Shown piece by piece: positions 3,024 to 21,565 of a DNA stretch of 64,000 nucleotides. This stretch comes from Caecitellus pseudoparvulus (taxonomy: Eukaryota; Protista; Bigyra: Bicosoecida), in assembly GCA_965644315.1 (NCBI GenBank), contig CBFFRQ010000067.1, forward strand, positions 744,001-808,000. Direction: 5' to 3'. The number at the start of each line of letters is the position of its first letter. Position 1 is the first letter of the stretch. The position numbers were made by a program, and so were the translations under genes. Under the pieces are notes generated by a model. It did not search any database and was not told the DNA's origin. It saw only the letters and a list, made by a program, of their open reading frames with translations.

Positions 3024-6000
3024 TCAAAGCAGAAGTTTTGACGTTGATGCCTTGTACACCCCCGCACTCTTGGAGCGCTCGACGCTGTCAGCTCGCAGTG
3101 ACTTGCTGGACCGAGACTGCTGACGGTGACGGCTTCGGGAGGTTTTAAATGACCTAGCAGAAGGACGCTGCGCCTGCAGCAACGCAGAAGTAGCGCTGGA
3201 CATGTAACTGGATGTCCTGCTATCGACAGCAGCTTTGGCATCGGCGCTCAAGTCCTGGCGGCCAGTGGACGGCGCACGTTTCACAAGCAGGGTGGAAGGT
3301 ATGCGCTTCGTCGCATCGATGGACAACATGCGTCTGGAACCACGCTCGCCACTTACTCGCCCGCAGATGACCAGCGAGAGCAAGAAGTGGATGGCCCGAG
3401 CGACAGCAGCTGGAAACACAGCAGCTGCCAACGCGAGGAGGAGTGGCAGCCAAAACCCGATTGCGACAAAGAAATCAACCAGGGCGTGCACAGTCGGTGT
3501 GTGCGTGGACACGGGGGACACGTGGGGGTTTGCACGTCCCGTGCCTTGGAAGAAGGCCCCTGACTCCCATGCAATGAGCACGTAAGACGCAGCCGCCTGA
3601 AGCATCTGCCCGACTTGAACGCAGGCAACGAGGGTGTCGTGGGTCGCGCTGGCCAGCACCAGGCGACGCAGGCCGGAAACAGAAGACTTCGCGAAGGGGG
3701 CATACTTGAGCGCCTCTCTTGACATGAGCATCGGGCGAAAGTAAAAGTGCAGGAACGCGCCGACAAGTGTCACCACCATGGCGGCGTACGCGCGCCCCAG
3801 AAGGGTGGGGGACACAGATGCAACAAGGGCCAGGGCCAGACACTGCCCGACCCACATCGCACAGTACCACCATGTTGTGGGAGTGAAGACACCCCACACC
3901 CAGCCCGCACCGCTCCAAACGACGCGAGTCCAGCCAGCTGCAAGCGACGTCAACGAGTCCGCCCGCATCCCAACAGCGGCCTTGCCCTGTGACTTGAGCG
4001 CCGGGTTCGAGCCAAGGATGGGAACAGCGTCACTGTTTATGCCTTGCTCAGTCGGGCGGGCAGTGCGAAGCAGTCGCGGCAAGGTCCACAGCACAGCAAA
4101 CAGAGCGAGTGACACCCAAGCCAGGCCAAGCAGCGCAGAGAAAACTTGCAAGGTGACGTGTTGTGCTGAATCTGCCGGAGTGGAGAAATCTGCCACCATG
4201 AATCGCTCGTGCTGCGATGCTGGAAGAGTGAGGAACACTGACACCATGGACAGCAGCGAGCGTGGCACGGTCATGAAAGCGGAAATGGCCAGGGCAGCCA
4301 CGCTTGCTGTCCTCCACGCCCCACCTGCAACTAGGCGGGCTGCAACCTGTCCCGCGCAAAGGGCGAGTACACCGCCAATAACGGGAAGAAGCACAGCCAG
4401 TGCAAACACCACTACGGGGTCAGCATCTGATCCCAGCACGCAGCTCGTGTATGGTGCATGTATGGGAAGTAGGGACGCGGTGTGGGCCAAGAAACTCACG
4501 CTGGAGCTGGCCACTCCCCTACCAAGTCGAAACGAATCCAATTGTGAAGACCACTGTAAGTGCAGCAGCAGGGCCCAGCATGCGACAAAGCGCAGCAGGG
4601 CAGCCGTCGGGCGATTCAAGTGGAATGCCTTCACTGCACGGGTGGTTGCCGGTGAGTCTATCGAAGTGGTGCACAGGGATGTATCCTGAAGAGAGGGCGC
4701 AGGAGAAGGCGCCTGCAGCCACCACACTTGACTGGAGCTTGGCTGGGTGCGAGTGAGCCACGCGAGGGGAGAGGCGGTGGACTCCACCCACTGCAACCAC
4801 AAAATGGTCATGCCAACCAGCAGAGCGAGGCCGAGAAGCATCGCAAAGGCCAAGGCCAGCCCTGGAACTGCCCCGCAAGGCAAGCAGTCAACCGACGCCC
4901 CGCCTGACGGGGGTGCATACGTGTGGTCACTCGTGCAAGACGCACACAGTTCGCCTTCGTGCCCTGCCGCACACCCAGTCAGCTGCACAGTGCGGTTGAA
5001 GGCGGTCGCCCCGCCCGATGTGTCGCCTGGCAGGCAAGCAAGAGGGTTCGGGCACAGCAAGATTGCTTGGGAGAAGGCAGCCTCCGTGGCACCGCGGGCC
5101 ACCCCGCTGCCGTCCCACACCCCGCTGGAGTGCGCCAGGCCATACCCCTGCAGCAGGCTGACCCTGCCGTCCACACAAACAGCCCCCAGGGGGCAAGCTG
5201 AGCAGGTCACTGCGCCTGGGAAGCTGAACCCGCCCTCACCACACCTGACACACACTGAAGGAGAGCTGGCCAGCCCAAGTGTCGGCTTGGGTCCGAACGT
5301 GCCGGCGGCACAAGGTGTGCAGTGAAGGGAGTGAGCTGTCAGCGTACCCGGCACCTCCACACGGCCATGCCCTGCCTTGCACCGGCAGGCGATGCTCCCG
5401 TCTCGCTCGGCACCCTCTGGGCAGCTTGCAGGTGTCGCGGTGAGCTGCGGGAACGGCAGCGAAACCAAAGGCCCGCCAACAATCAGCAAAGATCGCGCCT
5501 CGAGGGTCGGCTGCAGCGTTTCACCCGGCTGCAGCCTTCGAGCAAACTCCAGCGGAAGAAAGATGCCCAGTACTGGTGTGGCAGGGTCGGACGCGCCCAG
5601 TGATCGCTTCACATTCACTGGTAGGAGAGCTCGCTCCGTGCTGCTAAGAGCACGAACAAGCAAAGTCGCACTGCGTTGCAGCCGGCGCCGCGTGACATTT
5701 CCTGAGCCAGACAGTTGAGCGGCCAGAATGTTCTGCCCCAGCAAATGCTCCCTTCCCAATGCATCCCGCAGCACTGCCAAGCCCAGCACGACCCCATCAA
5801 CAGTGAACAGCGTCCCGTCTGGTGCTGCAAACGGCGATGGAATACTGGCAAGGTCTGGAAGTTGGAGGGGCACGTACAGTCCACTGACATTTGGGCTAGG
5901 GACAACCAAAGACGAAGTGAGCAAACTCGCACTGCCACGCAGCATGTCAACACTGACAACGCTGGACAGCAGCTCTGTTCGCCGCCGCGCTGTGTCATTC

Positions 6001-9000
6001 ATCAGCATCACCAGCGTCGCCGTGTATGGGCCAGCGTTTCGCGTGGCTTGCCGGTTCAACTTCACAAGGAGGGGCACCTGCCGCTCAGCGAACGCTTCCA
6101 CCATAAGCGGCTCTCCCAAAATCAGCGAGGTGTCCAGCCAAGCTGTTGCTGTCGCGTTGAGGGAGCTTTGCAGGGTTGCAAACTGCGCAGCGGGATCCAT
6201 CGTGCTGCCGCCACACTGCCCTGAAGCAGTCGGCTGCATGTGTCCGGGCAACACCAACGCATCTTGAAGCAACGCAGGTGTCGAGCCCAGGTTTCGAACA
6301 GACAGCTTCGACACAAACACTTCCAATGAGTTCCCCTCAGATGGAGCCAGTGGGTCTAGTCGCAGGAACTGCGGGCAAGGCTGCACGGTGGCCACGAGCA
6401 GCTGCACATGCAGTGGGTGCTGGCGTCCGCCGACGTCATCCAGGGCCACCACGAGGTCCGACACGTGCAGTCCAGATGGGAGCTGGGAGAGGTCGAAGCG
6501 GACAGTCACTGTATCGCGCGTCTGAGCTGCCGTGCGCCCTTGAACCAGGGGGGTCAGACCCTGCGTGGCGAGCTGGGTTAAGTCGATGGCGGTTGCAGGT
6601 GCAAGACCTGTCCCTGGAACCATTGCCGCGCCAAGGGGCAGGGAAGCGCTTACCCAGCAGGTATCAGAAGTTGGCGCCAACAAAATCCACGTCAAATCTG
6701 CGCTTCCGGTGGCAGATACACTCAAAGTACGCTCCATGAAACCCGACCCGCCACCTGAACCAGGCACTGCGTAGGCTGTGATGTCTGAGGGGCTCACAGA
6801 GCCCTGTGGAGCCAGGACATTCACACTCACTGGCAACGCCGCAGCCACTTGCCCTGTTGCTGTGTTGATGACAGTGACGTTGAAGAGGAACAGGCCTTGC
6901 ATGGAGAGTGGATCATCGCCAGACGAGCCGTCGAGAGCAGCTTGCAGGGCAAGGATGTTTACAGAGAACGCGATGCTCGAGTCGAATGAAGTGTACGAAG
7001 ACAAACTCAAAGTGGAAGATAGTCGAGGAACAGCAGGCAGTGCTGAAGGAGGAATGCCCATCGGCTTGCCAGCTGCTGCAAGGGTGGCCTGCGTGTACGA
7101 TGTCACGCCTTGTGCCTCGCTTGGACTCAAGCGACCCACCGGGACGACACCCAGCGAAATGCTGGTCAACTGTCCCAGCGCAGCAACTCGCACAGGCAAG
7201 TTCACTGATGCACTCCCTGTCCGCACGTGCAGAGTCTGCGGCGGGAATGCTGAAGGGAAGAATGCCACCTGTGTCACGTGCGGCCCAACAAGGCTAGAGG
7301 TGCCACTGCCAGGGGAAACGGAAGGGTTTGGAGACCGCGTCGCTGCAGGGCTGGAAGTAGGAGAAGGGCTCGCCGAAGGAGAAGCGGTGGGGGGTGCGGG
7401 GCATGCCGAAGGAACGACGGCGCAGAGAGGGAGGGAACCCGGTGACGGCCGCAGCACAGTTTCCAGCGTCCAGAAGCCACCAGACTGAGTCGTGCCGACG
7501 GCACTGGCAAAGGGCGCTCCAGCCAGGATATTCAAGGCACCGTCTGATCCATGCTGGGGTGCCACTGCCACGCTCCTCCCCAGTGGAGGGGCTTTCTCGA
7601 TTTCAGTCCTGTTCACGCCAGCTTGGCCACCTTGCAGGGCAACAGCTCGGAGGGGAAACCCGCTGCGAGCCATGTACAGCAAGGCAAAGGCTCCTCTTGG
7701 CAGCGGGCTGCTGCCGGCACCTACCCCAACGCCAATGAGCAGGTCGGGAACAGCGTCACCGTTGACATCCCCAAGCCCGACAGCACTGTAGCCAAACCTA
7801 GACCCCACCCCGAGCGAAAGCACAGCGGCACTCCCGTCAGAAATGTGGCGCCAATCAATCAACTGGGTCTGCTGGTCCAGGAACCACAGGAACACAGCGC
7901 CGAAAGTCCCGGTGCCTTCACAAGATTCACAACCAACTGCCAAGTCCATGAAGCCATCCCCATTGATATCACCGGCGGCCGCCACTGCTGAGCCAAGCTG
8001 GTGCACAAGGCCGCCGTACGAGAAAGCGCCCAATCCTTGCGAGATACGAGATGCGAAGCTCCACGTGCCGCCTTGTTGCAGTTGGATCATGTACACGGAG
8101 CCATTCCCTGACGCTGAGCCAGGTGCGGACACGGCCAGCTCTGTCGCCCCCTCCCCGCCGAAGTCTCCAATCCCTGCCACAGCGAAACCAAAATTGGAAG
8201 CAGGGTCCACGACCAAACCAGTACCGCTACTTATTTCGACCCCGGGGGTCCACTCATTGTGACCACCCCACAACAAGAACACGCCTCCTCGATCCCCGCC
8301 TGAATACGAGGGAGCGCCCACTGCAATGTCATCCAGGGAGTTGCCCCCAACGTCGCCAATTGGGGCCACAGCGTAGCCAAACTGTGAATGTGCGATGCTG
8401 CTTGTCGCAAACATGTCGAGGTGATGTGCAGGGAATCGGTTCGGAGGGAAACCGCTGTCGCAAGGGGGGTCTGAAAAGTCCCTGAACAGAACCACGCTGC
8501 CGTTTGTTGCCATCGGCTGCTCCCCAGGGGCTCCCAGTGCAAACACTGAGATGGCATCATCATACCCAACCCAAGCGACTGCTGTGCCCAACGCATCACC
8601 GCTGACTGGGTCTGTGTTTAGGCACGGAGCTCCTGGCTCTGTCAGTGTCGTGCGGACCACAACCCGTTGTGAACAAAGGCTCGTGCCAGCCGCAGAATCG
8701 AGCGTCCCACTGAAATCTTCCAGCGATGTGCTGAACTTGACCACTTCGCCAGAGTGCCGGTAGCCTTGGCGGGGAAGCCCCACCATCAGCCCCACGCGCG
8801 ACTCGGGCTCCGGAAAGGCAGCAAGTGCAGCTCCAAAATGGCTGGCGACGTTGCCCCGCTCCCATGGCTCACCATCAATGTGAGCCAGCACACCCTTGAC
8901 TGAGCCGTCCACCTGCAGCGCCAGAACCTGCACTGCTCCTGTGTTAGTGTCCTCTCCTGGCTCAGTAAATCGCTTGGCCCCCACTGTGATGTCCGGGATG

Positions 9001-12000
9001 CCGTCTCCGTTCACGTCGCCGACATGGACGAGGGAACTGCCTCCGCCAGCCTGGTCCTGGAAGAGATTTGCTGTTCCCAATCCCCCTGTGCCCACAATTA
9101 CTTGCCCACCAACCGGGAATGCTAGTCTACTTAGGAAAAGAATCGTGACGGCCCCCCCAAGGTCGGTCTCCAAATTGGAACGCGGAGATCCCACCGCCAA
9201 ATCACAAGACCCATCAGCATTGACGTCTGGAAGGTGAGCGAGCGATCGACCGAAGGCCCCCTCGGGATCCAGTGGAACAAACGTGCTGATTTCGGCCGCG
9301 GTGTACCACGTAAGTGTTGCGAGATCATGTCGGGAGAGGTCGAGGATAGCAATGGCCCCCTCTGCATACTCGTCATCGCTAGACGTGAGTGAGTCAGCAT
9401 AGTAGTCGTCTACAGGGGGACCTTCCGGCCAAAGATTCGTGTGGTTACTCGCATCCCCAAGCGCGACGGTCGCGTTGCCCCTTCGAGCTCCCAGCGCTGC
9501 CACAGCTGTGCCAAGCAAGGGGGAATTCCTGGTAAACCAGTACGTTGCTACAGACGTGCCAAACTGAAGGTCCCCATCTAGGCTCAGCCTGAAGACCCCA
9601 CCACCGGTACCGCTGCGGCGCATACCTACGGCCAACTCAAAGGTCCCATCTCCATCTGTGTCACCAAGCGCGGCCACTGCTGCGAAGAATACGTCAGAAT
9701 GCATGAAGTCGCTCATTTCTCGAATACTCTGCGGAGTTTGCGAGAATGTATGCATGCCCTCCAGTGTCCCATCTTCTCCCCCGCTGAACTGCAGCACGAA
9801 TAGCTTCGCATTCGAGGGGCTTGAGTCGATGGGACCTGGGGCGCACACGGCGAATGCCAAGGGCCCACCGGGAAAGTCCGATCCAAGCCAGGCGATGTCA
9901 GATCCAAAGAAGCCGTCCTCCAAGAGCACTCCACCCGGCAAGGTGTCGTTGTTCAGCACATCTGTCCCTGCAACTGAAGCTGAGGGTACAGACGAAGGAG
10001 TGGGAAAGGGGGTGCTACTCACTGACGTTGACGCAGATGGTGATGGTTGCGGAGCTGGGGAGTCTGAGGCTGAGGTTGAGGTGCACATTGTAGTCCCCAT
10101 ATACCCTGGACACCCACATACAGGAAAAGGTATGCAAGGATCAATCATCGGATCTGAAGGTGTTGTAGAAGGTGTTGGCGTGGCAGACTGTGTCTGCGCC
10201 GCCGAAGCAGACGGGGTGGTACTCGTGGACGGAGTTTGTGTGGCGGCTGTGGTTGGCGACGGGAACATTGTTGCTGACGGAGAAACAACCAAGGTCGGGC
10301 TGGCAGTCGGTGACGGGGAGGGCGACGGGAAGGCTGAGACAGAGGGAACCGGCGACGGGGAGGACGAGGTTGACGGAGTTTGCGACGGGGAGGAAGAGGT
10401 TGACGGCGAGGCTGAGGCTGAGGCTGAGGTTGAGGGAGACCATGCGATGGGTGGCACGGCACCAGTGACAGGTGCGGTCCACAGGCCGCCCCGATTCTCG
10501 CCAGATTGCCCATCACTTGTGTACCCGGGAGCTCCGATCGCGAGCATGACTTGTGAGGTCAATGCGTCATGATACAGGGCTGCTCCAAGTCCAAGGTCGG
10601 AACCAGCATCAAAGACAAAATCAGTGAAAGGAGGAAAGGCTCCACCTTTCGTGTTCGACACGGTCGCTTGAAGCAATGTCGGCGCGTCTGCAGAAAACAG
10701 TGACACGAAGTGCAACGCACCAGCAGCGGAAAGTCCGTCGGATTCGAAGGGCTGTGCCACGAGCAAGTCTGGAACGCCATCCCCGGTGATGTCGCCAGAA
10801 CAATGGACTCCCGGTGGGGGCATGGGGGCTGCGCCTGTGCTGCCGCCAAAGAGTGCAGCTTCAGTCAACCAGGTAACGTTCAAGAAGGCTTGCCCAGTGA
10901 CGTTCACCGTCGCAACCCACACGAGTGTGGCGTTTTCCCCGAAGCCCCCCACAGCACCACCAGCAAGGCCTGGGACTCCACTGGAATCCAGCTCTGGAAC
11001 AGCCGTCAGCGAAGCACCAAGGAAGAATGTGGGCTGTGTGAGCCAGGGCAAAAAGCTGAGAGGATTGCAAGGGGCTGAGTCATCGCCGGCCGCCGCGCTG
11101 ACTGAGCAGGCAGAAACATGCCCCTTGCTGCTATCATGCAAAGGTGCTCCGACAAATACGGTGTGCCTGGATGGCCAAAACATGCCCAGCCCGCCTGATG
11201 CCAAGGCCTGGCCAAACCGTGCTTGAGCTCCGACGACCAAGCCGCTGGGGTTCAAACTGGAGACGTTCACGAAAGCATCCACAGCGACTCCCACGCTCCA
11301 CAGAGAAGTTTCCGCAGAAGTGTTGGGAGCGCTGACAAGCAAGTGCTCTGTGAAAGGCACATCACTAAACTCCCCCAGCCAAAGCAAGGCTGTCCCGAAC
11401 TCAGAACCGGCGGTGAGTCCAGGCAATGGGCCTGGGGGCAGCGTGAGGAAAGCGCCTGTATCTGTAGGCTCAAGGCCCAACGACCGAACTTGCACTGCTC
11501 CAACAAATGCAAAGCCAGTTCCTGGCACGCCGACTGCAAGGCGAGCGCTAGCTCCAGATGGAGCAGGAAGCGAGGCGATGCTGCGCCCCAGAAAAGATTG
11601 GGGCTGTGCCAGCCCGAGCACCAGCGTGGCTTCGAGCGTGCCAAGCGCTGGGTGAACACCAACTGGCATGCCAGGCGGAGCAACTGCACCAGGTTTCGCA
11701 GCCTTGCTGGACCTCTTCAGAATGATGCAAGCCCCGCCCGGCTTCGCGCAGGATGAGGGTGCTGAGGCTGCCGTGTGAGATACTCGGGTGTTGGGGTCGA
11801 AGTGTGCAGCAACTGCAGTCCCGAGCCCAGCGCCATTGAACGAAGCGACACCTTGACCAGCGGGGGAAGCTTCTGCAAACGCAAGCCCCACACCAGGGGC
11901 TACATGCAGCGTCAGAAGAAGGCCTTGTGTGTTCCCTTCCCCAACATGAAAGTTGGGCAGGCCAGCTACCAGCATGGCGCAGCCATCGTACTTGCACGAT

Positions 12001-13975
12001 GGGCCGGCGGCTGACAGAGAATGCCCAAGCAATTGTACAGTGGATGGCACAAGCTTGGATGTCTCGGTGAAGGTGGGCATTCCTCCGTGAACGGTGAAGA
12101 TAGGGTCATAACTGAGAAGTCCGCGTGAAGCTCCCATTGATAAAAACAAGACAGCTCCTCTCGTCCCTTGCGGGCCGGGCAAAGTCGAGGCTCCTACAGC
12201 AAGGTCCGGGAATCCGTCTCCATCCATGTCTGGAACGCTTGCGACGGATGACCCGAACTGGTTGCAAGACGGCATTTCTGGGTACTGAACTTGCACGCCC
12301 TTGATGGTTTCTGAGGCTTCGTGTGGGAGCACAGAGATATTCCCGGTAATGTGCAGCACAAAAACGGAGCAGGAATTCAACCCTGGCGCTCCAACTGCCA
12401 CACTTGTCGTGGCGCCTCCTCTCTCGCTCGTCGGCAGACGAGCAAGCGACGTCCCGAACTCTGCGTTCGAAGCAACATGGTTCCCGGCGTCGTCAAACGA
12501 AGTGAGCAACTCCTTGCTTGCAAGGACTTGGCCATTGAGTCTCAGCAGCAGCATGATCACAGTCCCAACTCTCTCACCCCCGTGCATCCAATTCGGGGCG
12601 CCCACGATTAGGTCTGCAATGCCATCTCCGTTGACGTCCCCGGCAGGGGCGAGCGAGCGCCCTGCCCTGTCACTTGAAGTGGCGTTTGTGTACAATGGAG
12701 TTGGGTTTAACATGTTGATGCGCACTGAGTGCAGAGGGCGATTTCCCACAGAGAGAAACACGAGGCTCACTTCAGATGAAGTCATCGTGTAGTTTGAAAT
12801 GGCAAGGTCGGGCCCCCACGAACCGTCCAAGTTGTCCAACCACGCAAGACTCGCACCAAACCCATTCCCTGGCTGCGCTTCCGCAGGCACCACTTCACCT
12901 TGGCTGCCAAGTGCGATACCTGGTTCGTCCCATGACGCCATGGGCGCGTAATGCAGAGTGGTGGGCAGCAGCCATGGGCCAGCGGGCTGCATCCCAAGCA
13001 TACCAGACAGCACGAAAGAGACGGTGCTGGAATTCCCGAGCCTTCCCACCGAACCGCTCAGGCCCAATTCTGAGTACCCTGCCTTCGAACCCGGAATGAC
13101 CGTCGAGGGCATGCCTTGGTTCGCAAGGCTGGCACGCGAAAGCAGCAGCCCCGCTGTCGGGCTGCTGAAATTGCGTTCGAAGTTTAGCAGAAGCAAGCTG
13201 CCGTTGTGCATACCAGGCACACCATAGCCAGTGCAACCCACAATGAGTGAGGGCACCTCAGATCCATCCATCGCGCCGACGAGGGCCAAGCTCTCCCCCA
13301 TACGAGCACCTGGAGGCATGAATGCCAGCTGAGGATGGGTTGACGAAAGAAGAACGCTTCCGTGGCTCGACCCATCAGTCGAATTCAGCAGCAAAATGAG
13401 CACTGCGCCTGCTCCAGCCATTCCGCCGTAGTCTGGCACACCTGCAGCCAGATCAGGCGTGCCATCGCCGTCGAAGTCGGGCACACCACTGACGCTCGTG
13501 CCAAGCTTCTCACTTCCCAGAGGCAATCGTGGGTCATCGCCGGTGGTCATGTATGAGCCACTGGGAGTGCCATTTGACTGCAGAGTGACCACTAGCACGG
13601 CGCCTTGCGGGGCATAGTTCGGCATCGCAATAACTGCGTCAGGCACGCCATCCACATTGACGTCGCCCAGTCCGCTTACATCTGCGCCAGCTCGTGATGA
13701 GGAATATGTTGGCATACCAAAAGTGCCCGAACGCAGCTCGACAGTAAAGAACAGCCCCTGCGGGCCAAGTGAGGCGATCACTGCCCCATCGAAGCTCGGG
13801 CCAGACGCGCCGATGATGAGGTCACCGTATCCGTTGCCGTCAATGTCGCCCAAGCTCGCGACGGACCGACCGAATCGCACCGACGCATCGTAGTCAGAAG
13901 CCAGGTCGAAGTCATAGCTGCCATGCAAGCTCCCTTCAGCGTCCATGAGGAACACCTGCACCAGCCCGTGATCTG
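3024..13975 (-). CDS. Giant FG-GAP/integrin-alpha beta-propeller membrane protein, paralog B, 3' portion downstream of the piggyBac insertion
   Basis: ORF 3024..13961 has many FG...GD(V/I)NGDG.PD(L/I).VGAP repeats, Ser/Pro/Thr linkers, a beta-rich stalk, Cys-rich CxxC repeats (CTPCAAGTF, CVRCGEGGFS, CSACPLGAVC, CAAGHEGELCASC) and several hydrophobic TM segments. It joins in frame to 17621-20528 once the transposon is removed. Confidence 0.9.
9960..10440 (-). repeat. Ser/Pro/Thr-rich mucin-like linker (SPSTSASASASPS..., includes (GAGGCT)n) between propeller blocks
   Basis: Low-complexity SPS/TPS repeats in the translation. A second, shorter linker lies at about 7290-7400. Confidence 0.8.
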
Positions 13976-13979
13976 TTAA

Positions 13980-13993
13980 CCTCCTGGGGACTC
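13980..13993 (+). repeat. piggyBac left terminal inverted repeat
   Basis: CCTCCTGGGGACTC directly after TTAA; exact reverse complement of 17607-17620. Confidence 0.95.
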
Positions 13994-13998
13994 ATGTC

Positions 13999-14029
13999 CA
14001 AATTTGGCAGCTCTCGCCTGCCAAATTTG
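13999..14029. repeat. Subterminal perfect hairpin in the left end of the piggyBac
   Basis: CAAATTTGGCAG (13999-14010), a 7-nt loop, then CTGCCAAATTTG (14018-14029). Confidence 0.85.
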
Positions 14030-14195
14030 AGGCGCGATGTCTATTCAATGAGGAATGCATTTGACCATGTGTCACACACCCCAATTAAAAGGATTCAGTA
14101 CTCACCGTCGATTGAGTCAAGTCCCTTTTCAGCTCGCTTCACATCTTTCGCACCTGCGCGACGGGTGGTGCTCACATCTCAGCACCCTGCGGAAA

Positions 14196-16898
14196 ATGGC
14201 AGCTGCAAACAAGACGCTGCTCGTCTTGTCTCCTGGACAAGCTGAAGCACACCAACAGCTCTTTTTGGCTTCTTCCGATGACTGGGACACTGATGCATGC
14301 AAGAAGGAGCTGTTTGTGGGTCTGACAGTAGGTGTGTGGTCAGACAGCCGTCTTGTGGTTGCGTGGGTGGGATTTGAAAGTTTGGAAATGACTTGGGGGG
14401 ACGTGGACCCCACCAATGAGTGGGCAGACGGCGCGAGAATCGACGCTGATGCCCTCACAATGGTCCAGAGGGACATAGTTCACTCCTCGTGGAGTAAAGC
14501 CGTGGAGTTCGTCCGTGGAGAGGCGCAAGAGCTGCCTGGAACAGAGGTGGTGGCAGGGTCTGTAGAAGCAGTTCAGCTGGCCATTGCGGGACGTCCAACG
14601 CAGAAGGCTATGGCGAGCCGTAAACGCACAAGGCAAGACGGAGACGAAGCGGACGAAGACTATGAGAACCACAGCGACCTCGACAGCGAAGAAGAGATGG
14701 GGGCAGGAGCGACATCGACTGTTGGTGCGCAGTCAACTCCTGCGCTTCATGCTCCGGTGGCTCAACACGCCAATCCGCGCCAATTGGCCCCTGTGCATGC
14801 CCAACGCAAGATGGTAAGCAGTAATCGCAAGCTACAGAGTCCTCCTGATCCACACGATCCATCAACATACTCTTACGTAGCATGTACGCCTGGCGTACGA
14901 AGCCAGGCGACTCCAACCACAGACACTGCCTTCACCCCTGGACCAATCACGGCGCGAGGCAGACAGTACGGTATCAAGGACGCCATTCAATTGTTCCTGT
15001 ACGCAACGATCAACGTAGGTGGCTACGGTCGTCCGCATACTTGGGGGGAAGATGCACGTGAACGTGAAGTCCAGCTGCTACCGTGGTTGGCAGAGCTGGC
15101 GGACGAAGCCAGGGAGGAGCAGCTTCAGCGCGGTGTTTGGAAAGGACAAGACTGGCTGCGCTACGCGAGCCACCCCATCACAGCACGAGAACTGGAGGTA
15201 TACTGGGGCATATCATTGCTGATGGACACCAAAGACATCGGTGGCAGTATGAAAGCGTACTGGAGCAGGGCAGATGGCGTCATGCAGGTTAGATGCAGTG
15301 GCATGCCTCGCACGCGATGGGCAATCATCCGCCTGTGTCTGCGCGGATACAGCATTCGTCAGAGACAGGAGGCCCGTGACACTAGCAACACGACCAGCAA
15401 AGAGTACAGATCAGCCACATCCTTGCCACTGGAACTTGCTTTCAACCAAATGATGCCGCCGCTGTGGGAGATGTCCGAGTTCATGGCCGTCGACGAAAAC
15501 ATGTCAGTCTGCACGTCGTCTCTCTGTCCCTACAAGGTACGCATGCCCCTCAAGCCGGTAAAGATGGGTATAAAGACGTTCTTCGTCACTGACAGTCGCC
15601 AGCGATTCACCCCGCGGATCGCATTTTACAATGGGCAGCTTCTGTGGGACAGGCTAAAGGCTCTGCGGGGCTTTGAACATCACACAACCAGCATTGCGGC
15701 ACTATTGCACTACCTAGCAGGCCCTTTCATGCGCCCCAAAGGAAGCACGCGAGATCGGGTGTGTGTTGTCGACAATTGGTTCACCTCTGCAAAGATCTTG
15801 ACGAGTTTGTCGGCCGTGAAGGCGCCAGGACCGGTGCGAATCTTGGGCACCCTCCGTGCCAACAGCCGCCCGCTAGCAGTGAAAGACGCCATGGAGGCGT
15901 TGAAAAGGGACAAGAAGAGCACCACAAGAAGTACACCGTGCTTGGGTTTCTTTCCCATCACGAAGACCCCCCGTGGGCAGCTGTGGATAGATGCCACTAC
16001 TGTACCAGGCTGCCCTGCGGTGTTTGAGCCAGGAATCAGCAACCGTCTATCTATCTTCGTTCTCTGCGACCCACAGCCCTTCTCACTCATTACCAACAGT
16101 AGTCGATATAGTGCCTGGCATGGAAGTCGTGACATCCTGACAAAGCAGCCCGATGGCTCCGTACAGGCCATGAAGGGGCATGAAGCGCTCCGAGACTACC
16201 GCAAGAGCTACGGAGGGGTGGATCGCATGGACGCAGCTCTCGGGACGTACTGCCGCAACACACGTTGCGGAAAGTGGCCCCTACGCTTCTACAACCTAGT
16301 GATGTCACTTGTTTTCCAAAACATGGTCACGTGGCTGGACGCGTTGCCGCAGGCCGCTTCTTCGGTGCAGAGAAGCAGTCGGCTCTCCATCCTGAAGTGC
16401 CTCGCCATGGCACTCATCTACGGTGGAGACGAACCAAGCGCAACTCAAGAGACATACAGTAATCGCCTTGAGGGTGTTCTGATGAGGGACATAGAGGCCT
16501 TACAGGCCGGCTTTCGGGTGCGCATGCAGGAGGCAAGAGGGGGACGTGCGCCGTCTCCCCGGCCCGCGAGCCCACTGCAGCAAGCCATGGCATCGCCAGT
16601 GCTAAAACGAGCATTGCAAGCTGCTCTGGACCCCGCTATGCGCACTGCAGTGAAGCATAAAAAGAGCCCGGGACCATCGAAGTGCAAGCAACCGCGGTGG
16701 AGTAACTCCTTCAGTGTGCGTGGTGTTGGGGAGAAGCTATTCATTAGCATCACTAGGGGTACAGGGCAGGATGCAGTAGCACCACCTCAAATGCGTTGTG
16801 GAGAGCAGGACTGCAAGAAGAGGTCATCATCAATGTGCATGACCTGTGAGGCGGTGGTGTGTGTCGCATGCATGGCAGAGCATGGCTGCGTGAAGTGA
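14196..16898 (+). CDS. piggyBac (PGBD/DDE_Tnp_1_7-type) transposase, 900 aa
   Basis: Motifs MAVDENM (D at 15492), KPVKMGIK, VVDNWFTS (D at 15771), GTLRAN, YGGVDRMD (D at 16221) and KWPLRFY, plus a C-terminal Cys-rich domain RCGEQDCKKRSSSMCMTCEAVVCVACMAEH. The likely start is ATG 14196 (MAAANK); an in-frame ATG also exists at 14055. Confidence 0.95.
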   Translation: MAAANKTLLVLSPGQAEAHQQLFLASSDDWDTDACKKELFVGLTVGVWSDSRLVVAWVGFESLEMTWGDVDPTNEWADGARIDADALTMVQRDIVHSSWSKAVEFVRGEAQELPGTEVVAGSVEAVQLAIAGRPTQKAMASRKRTRQDGDEADEDYENHSDLDSEEEMGAGATSTVGAQSTPALHAPVAQHANPRQLAPVHAQRKMVSSNRKLQSPPDPHDPSTYSYVACTPGVRSQATPTTDTAFTPGPITARGRQYGIKDAIQLFLYATINVGGYGRPHTWGEDAREREVQLLPWLAELADEAREEQLQRGVWKGQDWLRYASHPITARELEVYWGISLLMDTKDIGGSMKAYWSRADGVMQVRCSGMPRTRWAIIRLCLRGYSIRQRQEARDTSNTTSKEYRSATSLPLELAFNQMMPPLWEMSEFMAVDENMSVCTSSLCPYKVRMPLKPVKMGIKTFFVTDSRQRFTPRIAFYNGQLLWDRLKALRGFEHHTTSIAALLHYLAGPFMRPKGSTRDRVCVVDNWFTSAKILTSLSAVKAPGPVRILGTLRANSRPLAVKDAMEALKRDKKSTTRSTPCLGFFPITKTPRGQLWIDATTVPGCPAVFEPGISNRLSIFVLCDPQPFSLITNSSRYSAWHGSRDILTKQPDGSVQAMKGHEALRDYRKSYGGVDRMDAALGTYCRNTRCGKWPLRFYNLVMSLVFQNMVTWLDALPQAASSVQRSSRLSILKCLAMALIYGGDEPSATQETYSNRLEGVLMRDIEALQAGFRVRMQEARGGRAPSPRPASPLQQAMASPVLKRALQAALDPAMRTAVKHKKSPGPSKCKQPRWSNSFSVRGVGEKLFISITRGTGQDAVAPPQMRCGEQDCKKRSSSMCMTCEAVVCVACMAEHGCVK

Positions 16899-17043
16899 GT
16901 GCAGTTGAATTGTGGAGGAAGGACACCATCACCCACGGCACGCGCTGGGATCAGTATCACCGAATACATCAGGGAATGCACGCAAGCTTGATATCGCACC
17001 CACCGCTTTCTTCCAGTTGCCCACCCCACCCTCAGGTGCTCCC

Positions 17044-17442
17044 CTATGTACGCGAGTGGTGGTGATTCTGGCACGGCACAAAGGACAGGAAGGAATTGCA
17101 ATTTGGATATACACTCACCTCGACTTCAACATCTGGAAATGCCGCGCGCACAGCCGCCACGAGCTCCTCTGGCAGGTCAGTGCGTGCCTTGCAGCCAGTC
17201 AACCCCGCCAGGGCTGTGTAGGCACCAAACCTGTGACTTGCCGGACAGTCCACATACTTTCGTCCAGCACGCTTAGTGCGTTCCTTGGCGACCGCAGGGG
17301 CACTTGACAGGGCTTCGTCTAGGATATCCTCTGCGCAGCGTCGGGAGTCAGGCAGTTTGGTCAGCTGCAGGCGGTATGGAAGACAGGGTGGTGAGCGGAA
17401 ATCGAAATGCACTCCTACCAAGCGCCTTTGCACCCAGCCCAT
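17044..17442 (-). CDS. Transposon accessory ORF2, KolX/P2X7-ballast-like small protein (about 97 aa if spliced)
   Basis: Lies inside the element, convergent to the transposase. Predicted exons are 17442-17419, 17364-17119 and 17067-17044. The predicted introns are in frame: GTAGGA...CTCAC...CTGCAG (54 nt) and GTGAGT...pyrimidine tract...CCAG (51 nt). Core sequence: HRFGAYTALAGLTGCKARTDLPEELVAAVRAAFPD. Confidence 0.6.
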   Translation of the reverse strand: MGWVQRRLVGVHFDFRSPPCLPYRLQLTKLPDSRRCAEDILDEALSSAPAVAKERTKRAGRKYVDCPASHRFGAYTALAGLTGCKARTDLPEELVAAVRAAFPDVEVEVSVYPNCNSFLSFVPCQNHHHSRT

Positions 17443-17606
17443 TGAAGACCATATCGGCCGGCAAGCTGGTTGTGTTTGAAGAAGCCATGTCGATCGGTCT
17501 TGGGTTCCTCCCTGAGCGTGATTACTATGTGAATTATGAATTATGAATTTGTAACAGAGCTCAGTGTGCGAGAAGCTCAACAGATCCTCAAATCCTCCTG
17601 AGAGCC

Positions 17607-17620
17607 GAGTCCCCAGGAGG
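17607..17620 (-). repeat. piggyBac right terminal inverted repeat
   Basis: GAGTCCCCAGGAGG directly before TTAA. Confidence 0.95.
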
Positions 17621-20528
17621 TTAAATTGCCCTGGGTAAAGAGAGGGCAGCCAACAGCAAAAATAGACAAGCCAGTCTCGGCGGGCCAATGCTGGGAAACA
17701 GCTGTGCCCTGGCCACATCCACTGCCTGGCGGAACATGCCTCAATCCAATCGTGGAAGTGTTGATGCGAGCATGGTCGTAGCGGTCTCCCGTGTACAGCC
17801 TCTGGGGCTGTGAGGCTTGAAGGTTTGTGTCAAGCAGCCACAGCTCGGGTTCGATCGCGTGTGGACGAACGGAGGTCAGCAGGTGCATGCGAGTTTGAGC
17901 GGAATCGGGAAACGCCAGCATGCTTCCGGCAAAAGAGTCGTTAGTGCCTGAGAATCCAACTAATCCGCGATCAGCACCGGAAATAACACGAGCAGCCTTC
18001 ACAACCACGTGTGTTCCAACTGCGTCAATGTTCACGTCGAGAATGAAGACTACACCTGCTCCAGGAAAAGCTGAGTTGTTGCGAGGGGCAGACACCGCAA
18101 TGGGCAAGTGGATCGTCCAGTTCTGGGGAGGCAGGACTGCTACAGCGCTGCCGAATCCGCAGTCTGGGGTGAGTACAGTGGCCAGAAGAAGCGTCGTGTG
18201 GGACATCTGCTTGGCTGACGACACTGCTAACGACCCAGGCGTGATGAAGAGCAACAACAAGAGTTCTTTGACACCAACCTCAGTTTGCACGGTGGACAAG
18301 ATCAAATGCTCAGGAGATCCTTGGAAACCAAGCGAGTGCAGCGAAGACCCAAGCCTGCTGTTCTGGCCACCGGCCGGAACGTTTGCATGTGACGTATCGT
18401 TGAACAAGTTCAGAGTGGGGGAAACCCATGATCCGCCTGAGCCCGGTCGCAAGAACACGAGGCAGCCCCGCTCGGCATCGTTATCAACAGTACAGCCAGG
18501 CATGGAGATTGCAAGGCCAGGAAACGCACCTGCGGTTGCTTCCATGGCCGCGATGCCCGTGCCGAACCGGCCTTGATCTACAAATGGCACTCGAGGGGTC
18601 ACTGAGCTCAGCGTCCGGTTGGACAGCTCCGCAGAAGCGTTGACACTGCCTGTGTCAGTCAAGTACAGTACATAGACAACGCCGACCCCGGCCTGGCCGT
18701 CGTCTCCACCTCGGTTTGGAGCTCCGACCGCGAGGTCGCCCACTCCATCCATGTTCCAATCCGCACTCGCCAAGGAACTCCCCCACCCGTCATCCGCATT
18801 CGGGCGCAGGGTTATGGCATCGAACGTGATGTTTGCGAAGAGCTCCGCCGTTGGGCCTCCTCCTTCAACCCCATCGCGTAGCCGGATGAGCATGACGAAC
18901 GCACCCTCCTCAGAGTAGCCAGGCAAACCAACTGCCACAAGCGGAGGGCCAAAGGGGCGAACTTCCATGTGAATGTTCGCAAGTGCAGTCCCTGGCCGCG
19001 AAAGGGCGGGCCAGCTCTGTGAGCCTCCCTCTGCCAAAGAAGTGCCAGTGATGGGATGCACACGGCGGACAAAATCATCTCCCCAGCCGGTGGTGAGCGG
19101 GGAGTCCTGCACGGAAGGCGACAGCGTCGTATTTGCGAGGTACATGCCACCAGCATCAGGAAGACTCCCGCCACCTAGCAGTCCGCGTGCGCCGAACAAC
19201 AGCTGCATGCCGCCCGCCCCGGGAATCGGTTGTTGCAGTGCCAAAATGCTGCTCCCGAACCCAGCACCAGAAGGGACCCCAGCGCCCTGGCAGTCAAGTG
19301 GGCTGAAGGAGGAGATCTTTCGGATAGTACCCCACTTCCCCAACAGGACAGTGTGCACGGTGTGGCTGGAAAAGCTGGGGGCCCCCGACAAGAGGTCCGG
19401 CACGCCATCGCCATCCACATCCCCCGCCGGCGCCAGCGTGTCCCCGAACAACCCTGTGATGTTTGGCAAGGAGAGCCCAAGATCTGCAGAGTCTAGGATT
19501 CGGTAGTGGGCAATGTGCAAGTCTGTGGTGAGGAACAGCAGCACCACTCCACCATTCGGCGCAGTCTGCTGCCCATCCACACCAACCGCCAAATCAACCA
19601 CCGAGTCTCCGTTGACGTCGCCCAGCGCAGCCAAGGAGCGGCCGAAGCGCCAGCTCTCGTCATTTGGAAATGGAACCCCGTCACTTCCTGTGCCATTGCG
19701 CACCAAGACATCATGCCAGGGCTCGCCAGTGTTCTGGAGCAACATCAGGAGGACAGCACCTGTCCCTGCGCCAGGCGCTGTGCCAGCCAAGTCAGGCACT
19801 CCGTCCCCATTCACGTCCCCCAGAGCAGCAAGATCTGAGGGGAACAATCCCGTGAATGAAGGTAAGTTGGGGGTGGATGAGACCTGCTTCTGGGAAGCAA
19901 CTGTCCCGTCCGGTCTAAGAAAGAAAAAGTACAGGTGGCTGGAGCTGGATGTCTCGTTTCCTGGGGCGCCCACGGCTAGGTCGGGGGTACCATGCTTATC
20001 CCCGTCCAAGTTCCCCATGCTGGCCAGGCTAGCACCGAACAGGGCGTTGGCAGCAGGGGGTGGCGAGGGGCTGATCACCTCGGTGAGTTGGGTGTACCCA
20101 ACCGGCGACGATGCGTTGGAGAACCAGAGGTACACAATCCCAGAGCCGGAGTCCACACCAGGCGCACCAACAGCGAAATCCAGAATGAAGTCACCGTTGC
20201 GCCATCCCAGGTAGGCAACAGAGGAGCCCAGCCTGCTGTGTGCCACAGGCGAGCTCGTCAAGTTTGCGCCTGGACGGAGTGCGGTCCAGCGCGTAATGTC
20301 CGCGCATGTAAGCTCTCCGACACCTGGACCGAGAGCAGGCGCACTCAAGGCGCGAGCATGGTGGTCACTCTGTCCGACTGAAGCCTCTATTTCCAGCTGC
20401 TGGGTGCTGCCTGGTGCAGGGTTGGAGGTTGGAGGTAGCGGGGAGAGCGGAAGGGACGCAGGGCACACCGCGAGACACGCCAGGCAGCTCAACAACGTCA
20501 GCAGCCGCATGGGGCTTGGTGGGGGCAT
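17621..20528 (-). CDS. Giant FG-GAP protein paralog B, 5' portion upstream of the piggyBac insertion
   Basis: ATG 20528 (or 20510) gives MPPPSPMRLLTLLSCLACLAVCPA, a signal peptide, followed by FG-GAP repeats (LGDVNGDGVPDLAG, GDVDGDGVPDLLSGAP, ADWNMDGVGDLAVGAP). With the insertion present, the frame stops at 17577 inside the element. The reconstructed CDS is 2908+10952=13860 nt (4619 aa). Confidence 0.9.
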
Positions 20529-21565
20529 TGTTTGGTATGCTCGATGTTTCGAGCTGAAGCTTGCAGTGGGGCACGCCAGGGGACGGCTAGGAGACCACTC
20601 GCGGCAGCGTGGCGAGGCCAAGTTCCGCAGCACCCCGCAGCACATTCACTTGCCGGCCCGGGTCCTCCTGCCGCCTTGAACGACCACCACAGAGGGAGGA
20701 CTGACTATGATGCAGTGTGCTGCAGCCTTGCTCAGACACGTGACTCGGACTGAGCCCTTTGAGCCCGCGGCGTGCCGGTGCAATGCAGCCGCCCAACTCT
20801 GACGGCAAGCTCGCACGAGCCGCGGCAGAGCTGCAAAGCTCTACGCACGCCTGCGAGGTAAGGCGCGGCCTCCAGATGGGCAGCACCAAGAGCACAAAGT
20901 TTTGTCGCTTTGGTGCGCAGTTCAGAGATGTGGATTCAGTTTTACACCCGTCAGCACATCGTGCAAAGCGGCGGTGCAAGCTGGGCACTGGCCGCAAAAT
21001 CGCTGGCGCTGCGCATTGCGATAAAGAGACAGTCGCAGCGTACAATGAAGGGAACCTGGAGAGCTTCCGACCGGAAGTTCATTTGACCTCCCCATCGCGC
21101 CACTTCTTCCGGTGGATCGCCCAGCACCGCTGGCAGAGCGTGGAACCTGCAGGTGGTTCGGCAAGGGCTTCGCTCCTGCGGCGTTTCTCGGCTCAAAGAA
21201 TGCTCTCTCAACGCAAGGCAAAGGTGCCTGAGCAAGAACACTCAGTTTGGGGAAAGGAAAGGGGTAGATTTCAGTCCCCGCAGCAGGCGCATGAGGTCAG
21301 ACGTGCCTCCTCGACGAGGCTAGGGGGCGCAAGGTGTGCTTCGGCAAGTGGTTGCCTTCGTTTGTCGGCGCCGCTCGTCCCCCTTGCAAGCGCGACGCGT
21401 GCACACGAAACAGCCTTCCACACTCAAACACTCAAGCAGTATACAGCAAGCTAGCAGGGTTTACTCTCACTTCTTTCCAAGTTGCCTGCACAGCAGCTCG
21501 CTGAGCTTTCAGCACTCCTACACCGAAACCCTGCCCGTTTCGCCTGCGTTTCAACCCACTCCACC

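Follow-up and report, generated by a model that had tools for sequence, protein, structure and literature searches.

A piggyBac element carrying a second, convergent gene (ORF2) is present in Caecitellus pseudoparvulus, within the stretch of 64,000 nucleotides analysed here and referred to as the window. ORF2 is very probably homologous to the C-terminal half of KolX, a protein of Kolobok transposons, and of the P2X7 ballast, as judged from a shared motif, bridging relatives and a predicted fold. Considered together, the data are best explained, with a confidence only a little above even, by a protist piggyBac with two convergent genes, in which ORF2 would be an accessory of transposition and its gene would be shared with Kolobok elements.

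The element (positions 13980-17620) has TTAA on both flanks and perfect 14-bp terminal inverted repeats (TIRs) starting with CC, and is an intact, autonomous piggyBac as far as the open transposase frame and the perfect TIRs allow it to be judged (Table 1). It lies inside a host gene for an FG-GAP-repeat membrane protein and, once the element and one TTAA are removed, the frame of this gene is continuous over 4658 codons, which argues for a clean and probably recent insertion. DNA, protein and family searches of the host genome (30.6 Mb, GC-rich and intron-bearing) found a single copy. Just inside the left TIR, but not at the right end, perfectly inverted 12-bp arms enclose a loop of 7 nt (13999-14029), and three short AT-rich repeats (17525-17545) between the right TIR and the ATG at 17488 are a possible promoter element of ORF2.

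The earlier note on this DNA had placed the stop of the transposase at 16898 in a piggyBac with CC-terminal TIRs; the inverted repeats and the match of the frame 14055-16898 to PF13843 (E 4e-20) bear this out. Translation likely starts at 14196, according to the sequence context and the starts of relatives. The catalytic Asp codons are at 15492, 15771 and 16221, and the Cys-rich C-terminal domain begins at 16797. The TTAA duplication with precise insertion, the short CC-terminal TIRs, the three Asp and the Cys-rich C-terminus are all shared with canonical piggyBac elements, whose transposases act alone. The window element differs from them in its second gene and in a transposase of about 900 aa with an N-terminal extension (14196-14560) that can be aligned with the extensions of its relatives P0002 and P0004; a Pfam search of this extension gave no match, and it is a candidate partner surface for ORF2. 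Kolobok elements are defined by 5'-RR..YY-3' termini and a DDD/E transposase with C/DxxH (PMC9587614), whereas the window element ends in CC..GG and its PF13843 transposase groups among piggyBacs.

Table 1. Features of the two-gene piggyBac in the window and copies of the Kolobok-type element of the same genome.
Feature	Position	Strand	Basis or remarks
Host FG-GAP-repeat membrane protein gene, element inside	3024-20645	-	frame continuous after removing the element
Left TTAA target-site duplication	13976-13979	none	repeat/TSD comparison
Left TIR, 14 bp, starts with CC	13980-13993	+	100% complementary to 17607-17620
piggyBac transposase	14196-16898	+	about 900 aa; frame open from 14055; PF13843
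ORF2, end of the coding sequence with stop (exon 3 in case intron 2 is spliced)	17044-17067	-	frame translation
Possible ORF2 intron 2	17068-17118	-	predicted; 51 nt, in frame, stop-free; donor perfect, with pyrimidine tract; no counterpart in relatives
ORF2 exon 2, minimal ballast/KolX core of three helices	17119-17330	-	homology; predicted fold of the L007 relative
KolX-type motif	17131-17235	-	pattern from published alignment
ORF2 intron 1, corrected	17331-17418	-	predicted; 88 nt, phase 1; same position and phase in L007
ORF2 exon 1, corrected	17419-17488	-	ATG 17488 or 17452; exon comparison with relatives
Right TIR, 14 bp	17607-17620	-	inverted-repeat comparison
Right TTAA target-site duplication	17621-17624	none	repeat/TSD comparison
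Kolobok-type copies	L039 695-5556 (G000:C1); L037 (C211); L038 (C31); L040 (C58)		4862-bp family

The transposase core, used as query in an exhaustive profile search, returned three near relatives (P0001, P0002 and P0004). P0002 lies within a complete 3.5-kb piggyBac with 26-bp TIRs (L007), in which the transposase is 31% identical to that of the window and a convergent ORF is 34% identical to ORF2 in an ungapped alignment (E 8e-12). P0004 and its variants lie within another complete element (L029-L032), with a transposase that is 21% identical and a convergent ORF2 that is recognised by the two-sequence profile (for L029, probability 88 and E 3e-6) and keeps the longer KolX spacing and the xGF tail, while the contig of P0001 is too short to show presence or absence of ORF2. 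The four transposases form one clade, supported at 100/99 in a maximum-likelihood tree for which 31 rows were selected among the transposase matches and at 99 in a 117-row quick tree, fragments and very long rows being left out of the trees. ORF2 is present in the same place and orientation in all three complete members known, the DNA of which is unalignable, and the residues R, F, Y, R and P are invariant among the ORF2 proteins. The two-gene lineage that had been proposed from the window alone is thus recovered, together with the co-conservation of ORF2 in relatives that was to be looked for, including the position and phase of the predicted intron 1 shared with L007.

Among seven piggyBacs outside the clade, six showed no such ORF, although split or diverged genes could escape detection. 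In the seventh (L050/L051; L050 2708-6709), the transposase is preceded, in tandem on the same strand, by an upstream KolX-like frame that keeps the motif Cys and matches the ORF2 profile (probability 86, E 5e-6); a 1-kb element with the same ends (L050 1622-2649) is found just upstream of this piggyBac. The left flank of the P0004-type element is 28S rDNA (Rfam RF02543; L029 1-195 and the 5' flank of L030), and other contigs show several different flanks. The rDNA-side TTAA is the site used by Pokey and R2, and the P0004-type element is possibly a second rDNA-inserting piggyBac, or the contigs could instead join different insertions. Word-index searches with the transposase core and ORF2 found nothing new, ESM feature searches gave no usable match (two of the queries in these two kinds of search were the unspliced frame 17047-17442, with intron sequence included), and scans of metagenome and viral contigs found no relatives. 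Three further matches were discarded as chance: a DNA-pattern match on contig C65 and a profile match on contig C69, both antisense to another reading frame, and a profile match on contig C90 with E 0.07-7.

ORF2 is read from the minus strand and its stop is only 146 bp from that of the transposase. In the earlier note it had been modelled as a 97-aa product with introns of 54 and 51 nt, both of which are multiples of three and stop-free, so that the sequence does not force them. The comparison with L007 favours a different first intron: in that element a CGCAG acceptor is followed by AG GAA ATG, homologous to the window at 17331 (CGCAG, then AG GAT ATC), and in both elements intron 1 follows a TTG/GT donor in phase 1. 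In the resulting 88-nt intron, a branch-like CTGAC precedes the end by 21 nt. With the acceptor at 17331 the last nine residues of exon 1 score +35 against three relatives, a value reached by 1 in 10,000 of the 9-mers of the window, versus -26 in the frame read earlier. The ATG at 17488 has a good context and is the first after the TIR, with 17452 as an alternative, whereas the acceptor 17365 combined with ATG 17488 leads to a stop within a few codons. Intron 1 therefore keeps the donor at 17418 that had been claimed for it but, from these comparisons, probably extends to 17331 with a start at 17488 or 17452, the acceptor 17365 and ATG 17442 being probably wrong. The second claimed intron (17118-17068) has a perfect AG/GTGAGT donor, one of only 2 in the window, but is without counterpart in the relatives and affects only the tail of ORF2. 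The product would be roughly 100 aa long, arithmetic on the predicted introns giving 101 or 118; its exons were each compared with the relatives separately.

The minus-strand motif had been described with LPEEL in place of LPxC and without a Cys cluster, and it stands as described. It conforms to R-x2-AY..R..LP..IR-x2-FP and scores 13 with a position pattern taken from the published KolX alignment, while the next best score in the six frames of the 64-kb window is 8 and none of 1000 shuffles of the element exceeded 9. This pattern was picked after the motif had been seen and is supportive only, so that the independent evidence comes from the relatives. As read by eye from the published alignment, the motif contains the equivalents of the P2X7 residues R546 (17232), Y550 (17220), P570 (17172), R578 (17148) and F581 (17139), together with those of L569 and P582, whereas H547, R574 and K583 are not kept and the equivalent of C572 (17166) is Glu. 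The ORF2 product further differs from the P2X7 ballast (PF20478 P2RX7_C; PDB 6U9V, 9E3P) in being a free small protein without the zinc-binding part and without a Pfam match.

From a structural perspective, the AlphaFold model of the L007 ORF2, computed with the window ORF2 as second row, consists of three helices (pLDDT 90) and superposes on P2X7 residues 512-584. Among ESM Atlas entries the P2RX7_C cluster matches this model best (TM 0.83, rmsd 1.9 over 66/66 residues; next match 0.54), and in a second structural look P2X7 512-584 ranked first (Z 6.2, rmsd 2.7). The agreement is weaker in Foldseek against the PDB, where P2X7 chains have the highest probability of all matches (0.63) but E-values above 1, and in a wide structural search, where P2X7 came sixth (Z 3.7); three-helix folds match easily in searches of this kind. 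The single-sequence model of the window ORF2 is poor (pLDDT 56) and gave no structural match. Pfam PF20478 and P2X7 sequence-profile searches gave no match, PF20478 being silent at E 10 for any ORF2, and a search of the host genome with PF20478 and PF20700 was blank, with controls likewise silent. The relationship to KolX and the P2X7 ballast put forward in the earlier note is thus upheld by the predicted fold and by the bridging ORF2 proteins but not by a sequence profile.

With KolX of the Kol0 lineage of Kolobok, compared here only visually and with a short pattern, ORF2 shares its place as second gene of a TTAA-duplicating DNA transposon and the R-x2-AY, R-x3-P and IR-x2-FP pattern. It differs in its carrier, which has CC termini and a piggyBac transposase instead of RR termini and a C/DxxH transposase, and in the lack of the N-terminal zinc cluster (seven zinc-binding Cys) and of the YxGF tail. 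The window ORF2, without zinc cluster, motif Cys and terminal YxGF, is not a full member of the KolX/ballast family; the tail is also absent in L007, while xGF is present in L029, L050 and the ORF2 of a Kolobok-type element of the host. The GDP site of P2X7 comprises R546, H547, R574, R578 and K583; of these five, distant ballast domains, outside deuterostomes, retain R546 and R578 only (PMC7016195). The window ORF2 keeps the equivalents of both, but the loss of the R578 equivalent in the L029 and Kolobok-type ORF2 and the missing xGF tail in the window and L007 make GDP binding doubtful.

The Kolobok-type element was reached by searching the host genome with the three-sequence piggyBac ORF2 profile. 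It is 4862 bp long, with TTAA and GG..CC termini, and in its transposase frame of 1190 codons the motifs DG, DxD, DxxH and TNxCES, known from published Kolobok transposases, are recognisable by eye; a Pfam search of this frame gave no match. The convergent ORF2 of this element is Cys-free, agrees with the profile of the piggyBac ORF2 proteins (probability 95, E 2.5e-8) and has the same RFxxY and LPxEL state as the window ORF2. The four copies start with basic NLS-like stretches and show 1-5 synonymous and no replacement differences at the codon level. This gene needs a phase-1 intron to stay in frame, four codons before an aromatic residue, and at the same position an intron is predicted both in the L029 ORF2 and in a third gene of the host, on contig C50. 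Since the derived motif and the intron position are shared, the piggyBac and Kolobok-type genes would descend from one gene, and at least one transfer of ORF2 between the two TTAA superfamilies, in either direction, is probable. The module exchange suggested earlier thus gains a homologous Cys-free gene in a host Kolobok-type element.

The third, minimal-KolX-like gene (L048 about 8395-9541, at the end of G000:C50) follows a possible terminus starting with GG, and the end of the contig truncates its partner gene. The C31 copy of the Kolobok-type element (L038) is cut by telomere repeats, beyond which an AT-rich stretch (354-1334) contains a frame resembling a D5-type primase-helicase and is possibly a piece of an endogenous virophage or Polinton-like element. 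On contig C58 (L040) there is a head-to-tail junction over one TTAA.

Whether a piggyBac with such a gene had already been catalogued was a question of the earlier note, and the pairing is indeed on record. Kojima and Bao (2022) mention two piggyBacs with a KolX-like protein without most cysteines, piggyBac-2_GrCh and piggyBac-14_PI, in one sentence and a two-sequence supplement (Data S6), and put KolX forward as the origin of the ballast in P2X7 (PMC9587614). The window element fits this description, a piggyBac with a protein similar to KolX's C-terminal portion without most Cys, and the surprise of the pairing is accordingly limited. The comparison with these two families covered the KolX-like proteins alone: the published ones do not show the RFxxY form but retain both the motif Cys (PxC) and part of the upstream Cys, whereas the window ORF2 has Glu at the Cys site and a motif four residues shorter. 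A literature search that placed most subscription journals and Repbase Reports outside its scope found nothing beyond that paper on the piggyBac/KolX pairing and no paper assigning a function to KolX. Not found described in it were the clade, its conserved convergent layout and intron, the Cys-free RFxxY...LPxEL form and the sharing of this form with a co-resident Kolobok-type element.

As is established for piggyBac, the DDD transposase would cut at the 14-bp TIRs and insert at TTAA, here indicated by motifs. ORF2 would be a spliced gene whose product has the three C-terminal helices of the KolX/P2X7 ballast fold but no zinc cluster, and the retention of ORF2 beside the transposase over long divergence suggests that it serves the element. 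Second proteins assist transposition in MuDR, Harbinger and CACTA elements. By analogy, and with a confidence just short of even, ORF2 may be a nuclear accessory factor acting directly in transposition, its invariant Arg/Tyr face binding either the transposase or a phosphate-bearing ligand, which would be the DNA backbone or a nucleotide. The contact between MURA and MURB is a precedent for such a pairing of transposase and second protein (PMC12973397).

The main rival arises from the occurrence of the module beside two unrelated transposases, of piggyBac and Kolobok types: ORF2 would act on the host, as an anti-silencing protein or as an adaptor to chromatin or host factors, and would help any element that carries it. 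VANC of VANDAL elements is the model for such an anti-silencing role. The presence of the module in both orientations fits a role independent of the transposase, and the NLS-like stretches of the Kolobok-type copies also speak for it. However, no chromatin-related domain or match was found and the TTAA target common to both carriers points to the transposition step; action on the host is regarded as rather unlikely. A lower probability still is given to ORF2 being a brake, in which the protein or the convergent transcript would limit transposase output and keep copy number low, as the closely spaced convergent stops and the single copy of the element would allow; conservation at the protein level disfavours a pure antisense role, and the tandem arrangement in L050 and the several different flanks of L029-type elements also argue against a brake. 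That ORF2 is a captured KolX fragment, passively carried and decaying, is suggested by what the window and L007 proteins have lost, namely the Cys cluster, four motif residues and the xGF tail, but is very improbable in view of the open frames, the conserved intron and the same invariant residues in elements with transposases 21-31% identical and unalignable DNA. Convergence of a conserved accessory gene on a KolX/ballast likeness, for which the short helical fold and the lack of a significant PF20478 match could be cited, deserves equally little credit given the clear gap below the best ESM Atlas match and the L029 and L050 proteins, which bridge to the published KolX pattern through longer spacing, the xGF tail and, in L050, the Cys.

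On the preferred reading, a two-gene piggyBac with ORF2 as an accessory of transposition, the ballast core can persist without the zinc cluster, and accessory genes can be common to transposon superfamilies within one host. Moreover, a compact and intact piggyBac with a conserved KolX-like gene of 100 aa makes the function of KolX directly testable, as excision and integration assays are routine for piggyBac. A more tentative, and on balance doubtful, extension is that TTAA-directed transposition in the clade needs the minimal, zinc-free ballast protein as an exchangeable cofactor, and that passage between Kolobok and piggyBac occurred more than once in protists (convergent in this clade, tandem and Cys-keeping in L050, and the two published families). 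If true, this would be the first piggyBac to need a second protein, and no system would be simpler for finding out what KolX and the ancestor of the P2X7 ballast do.
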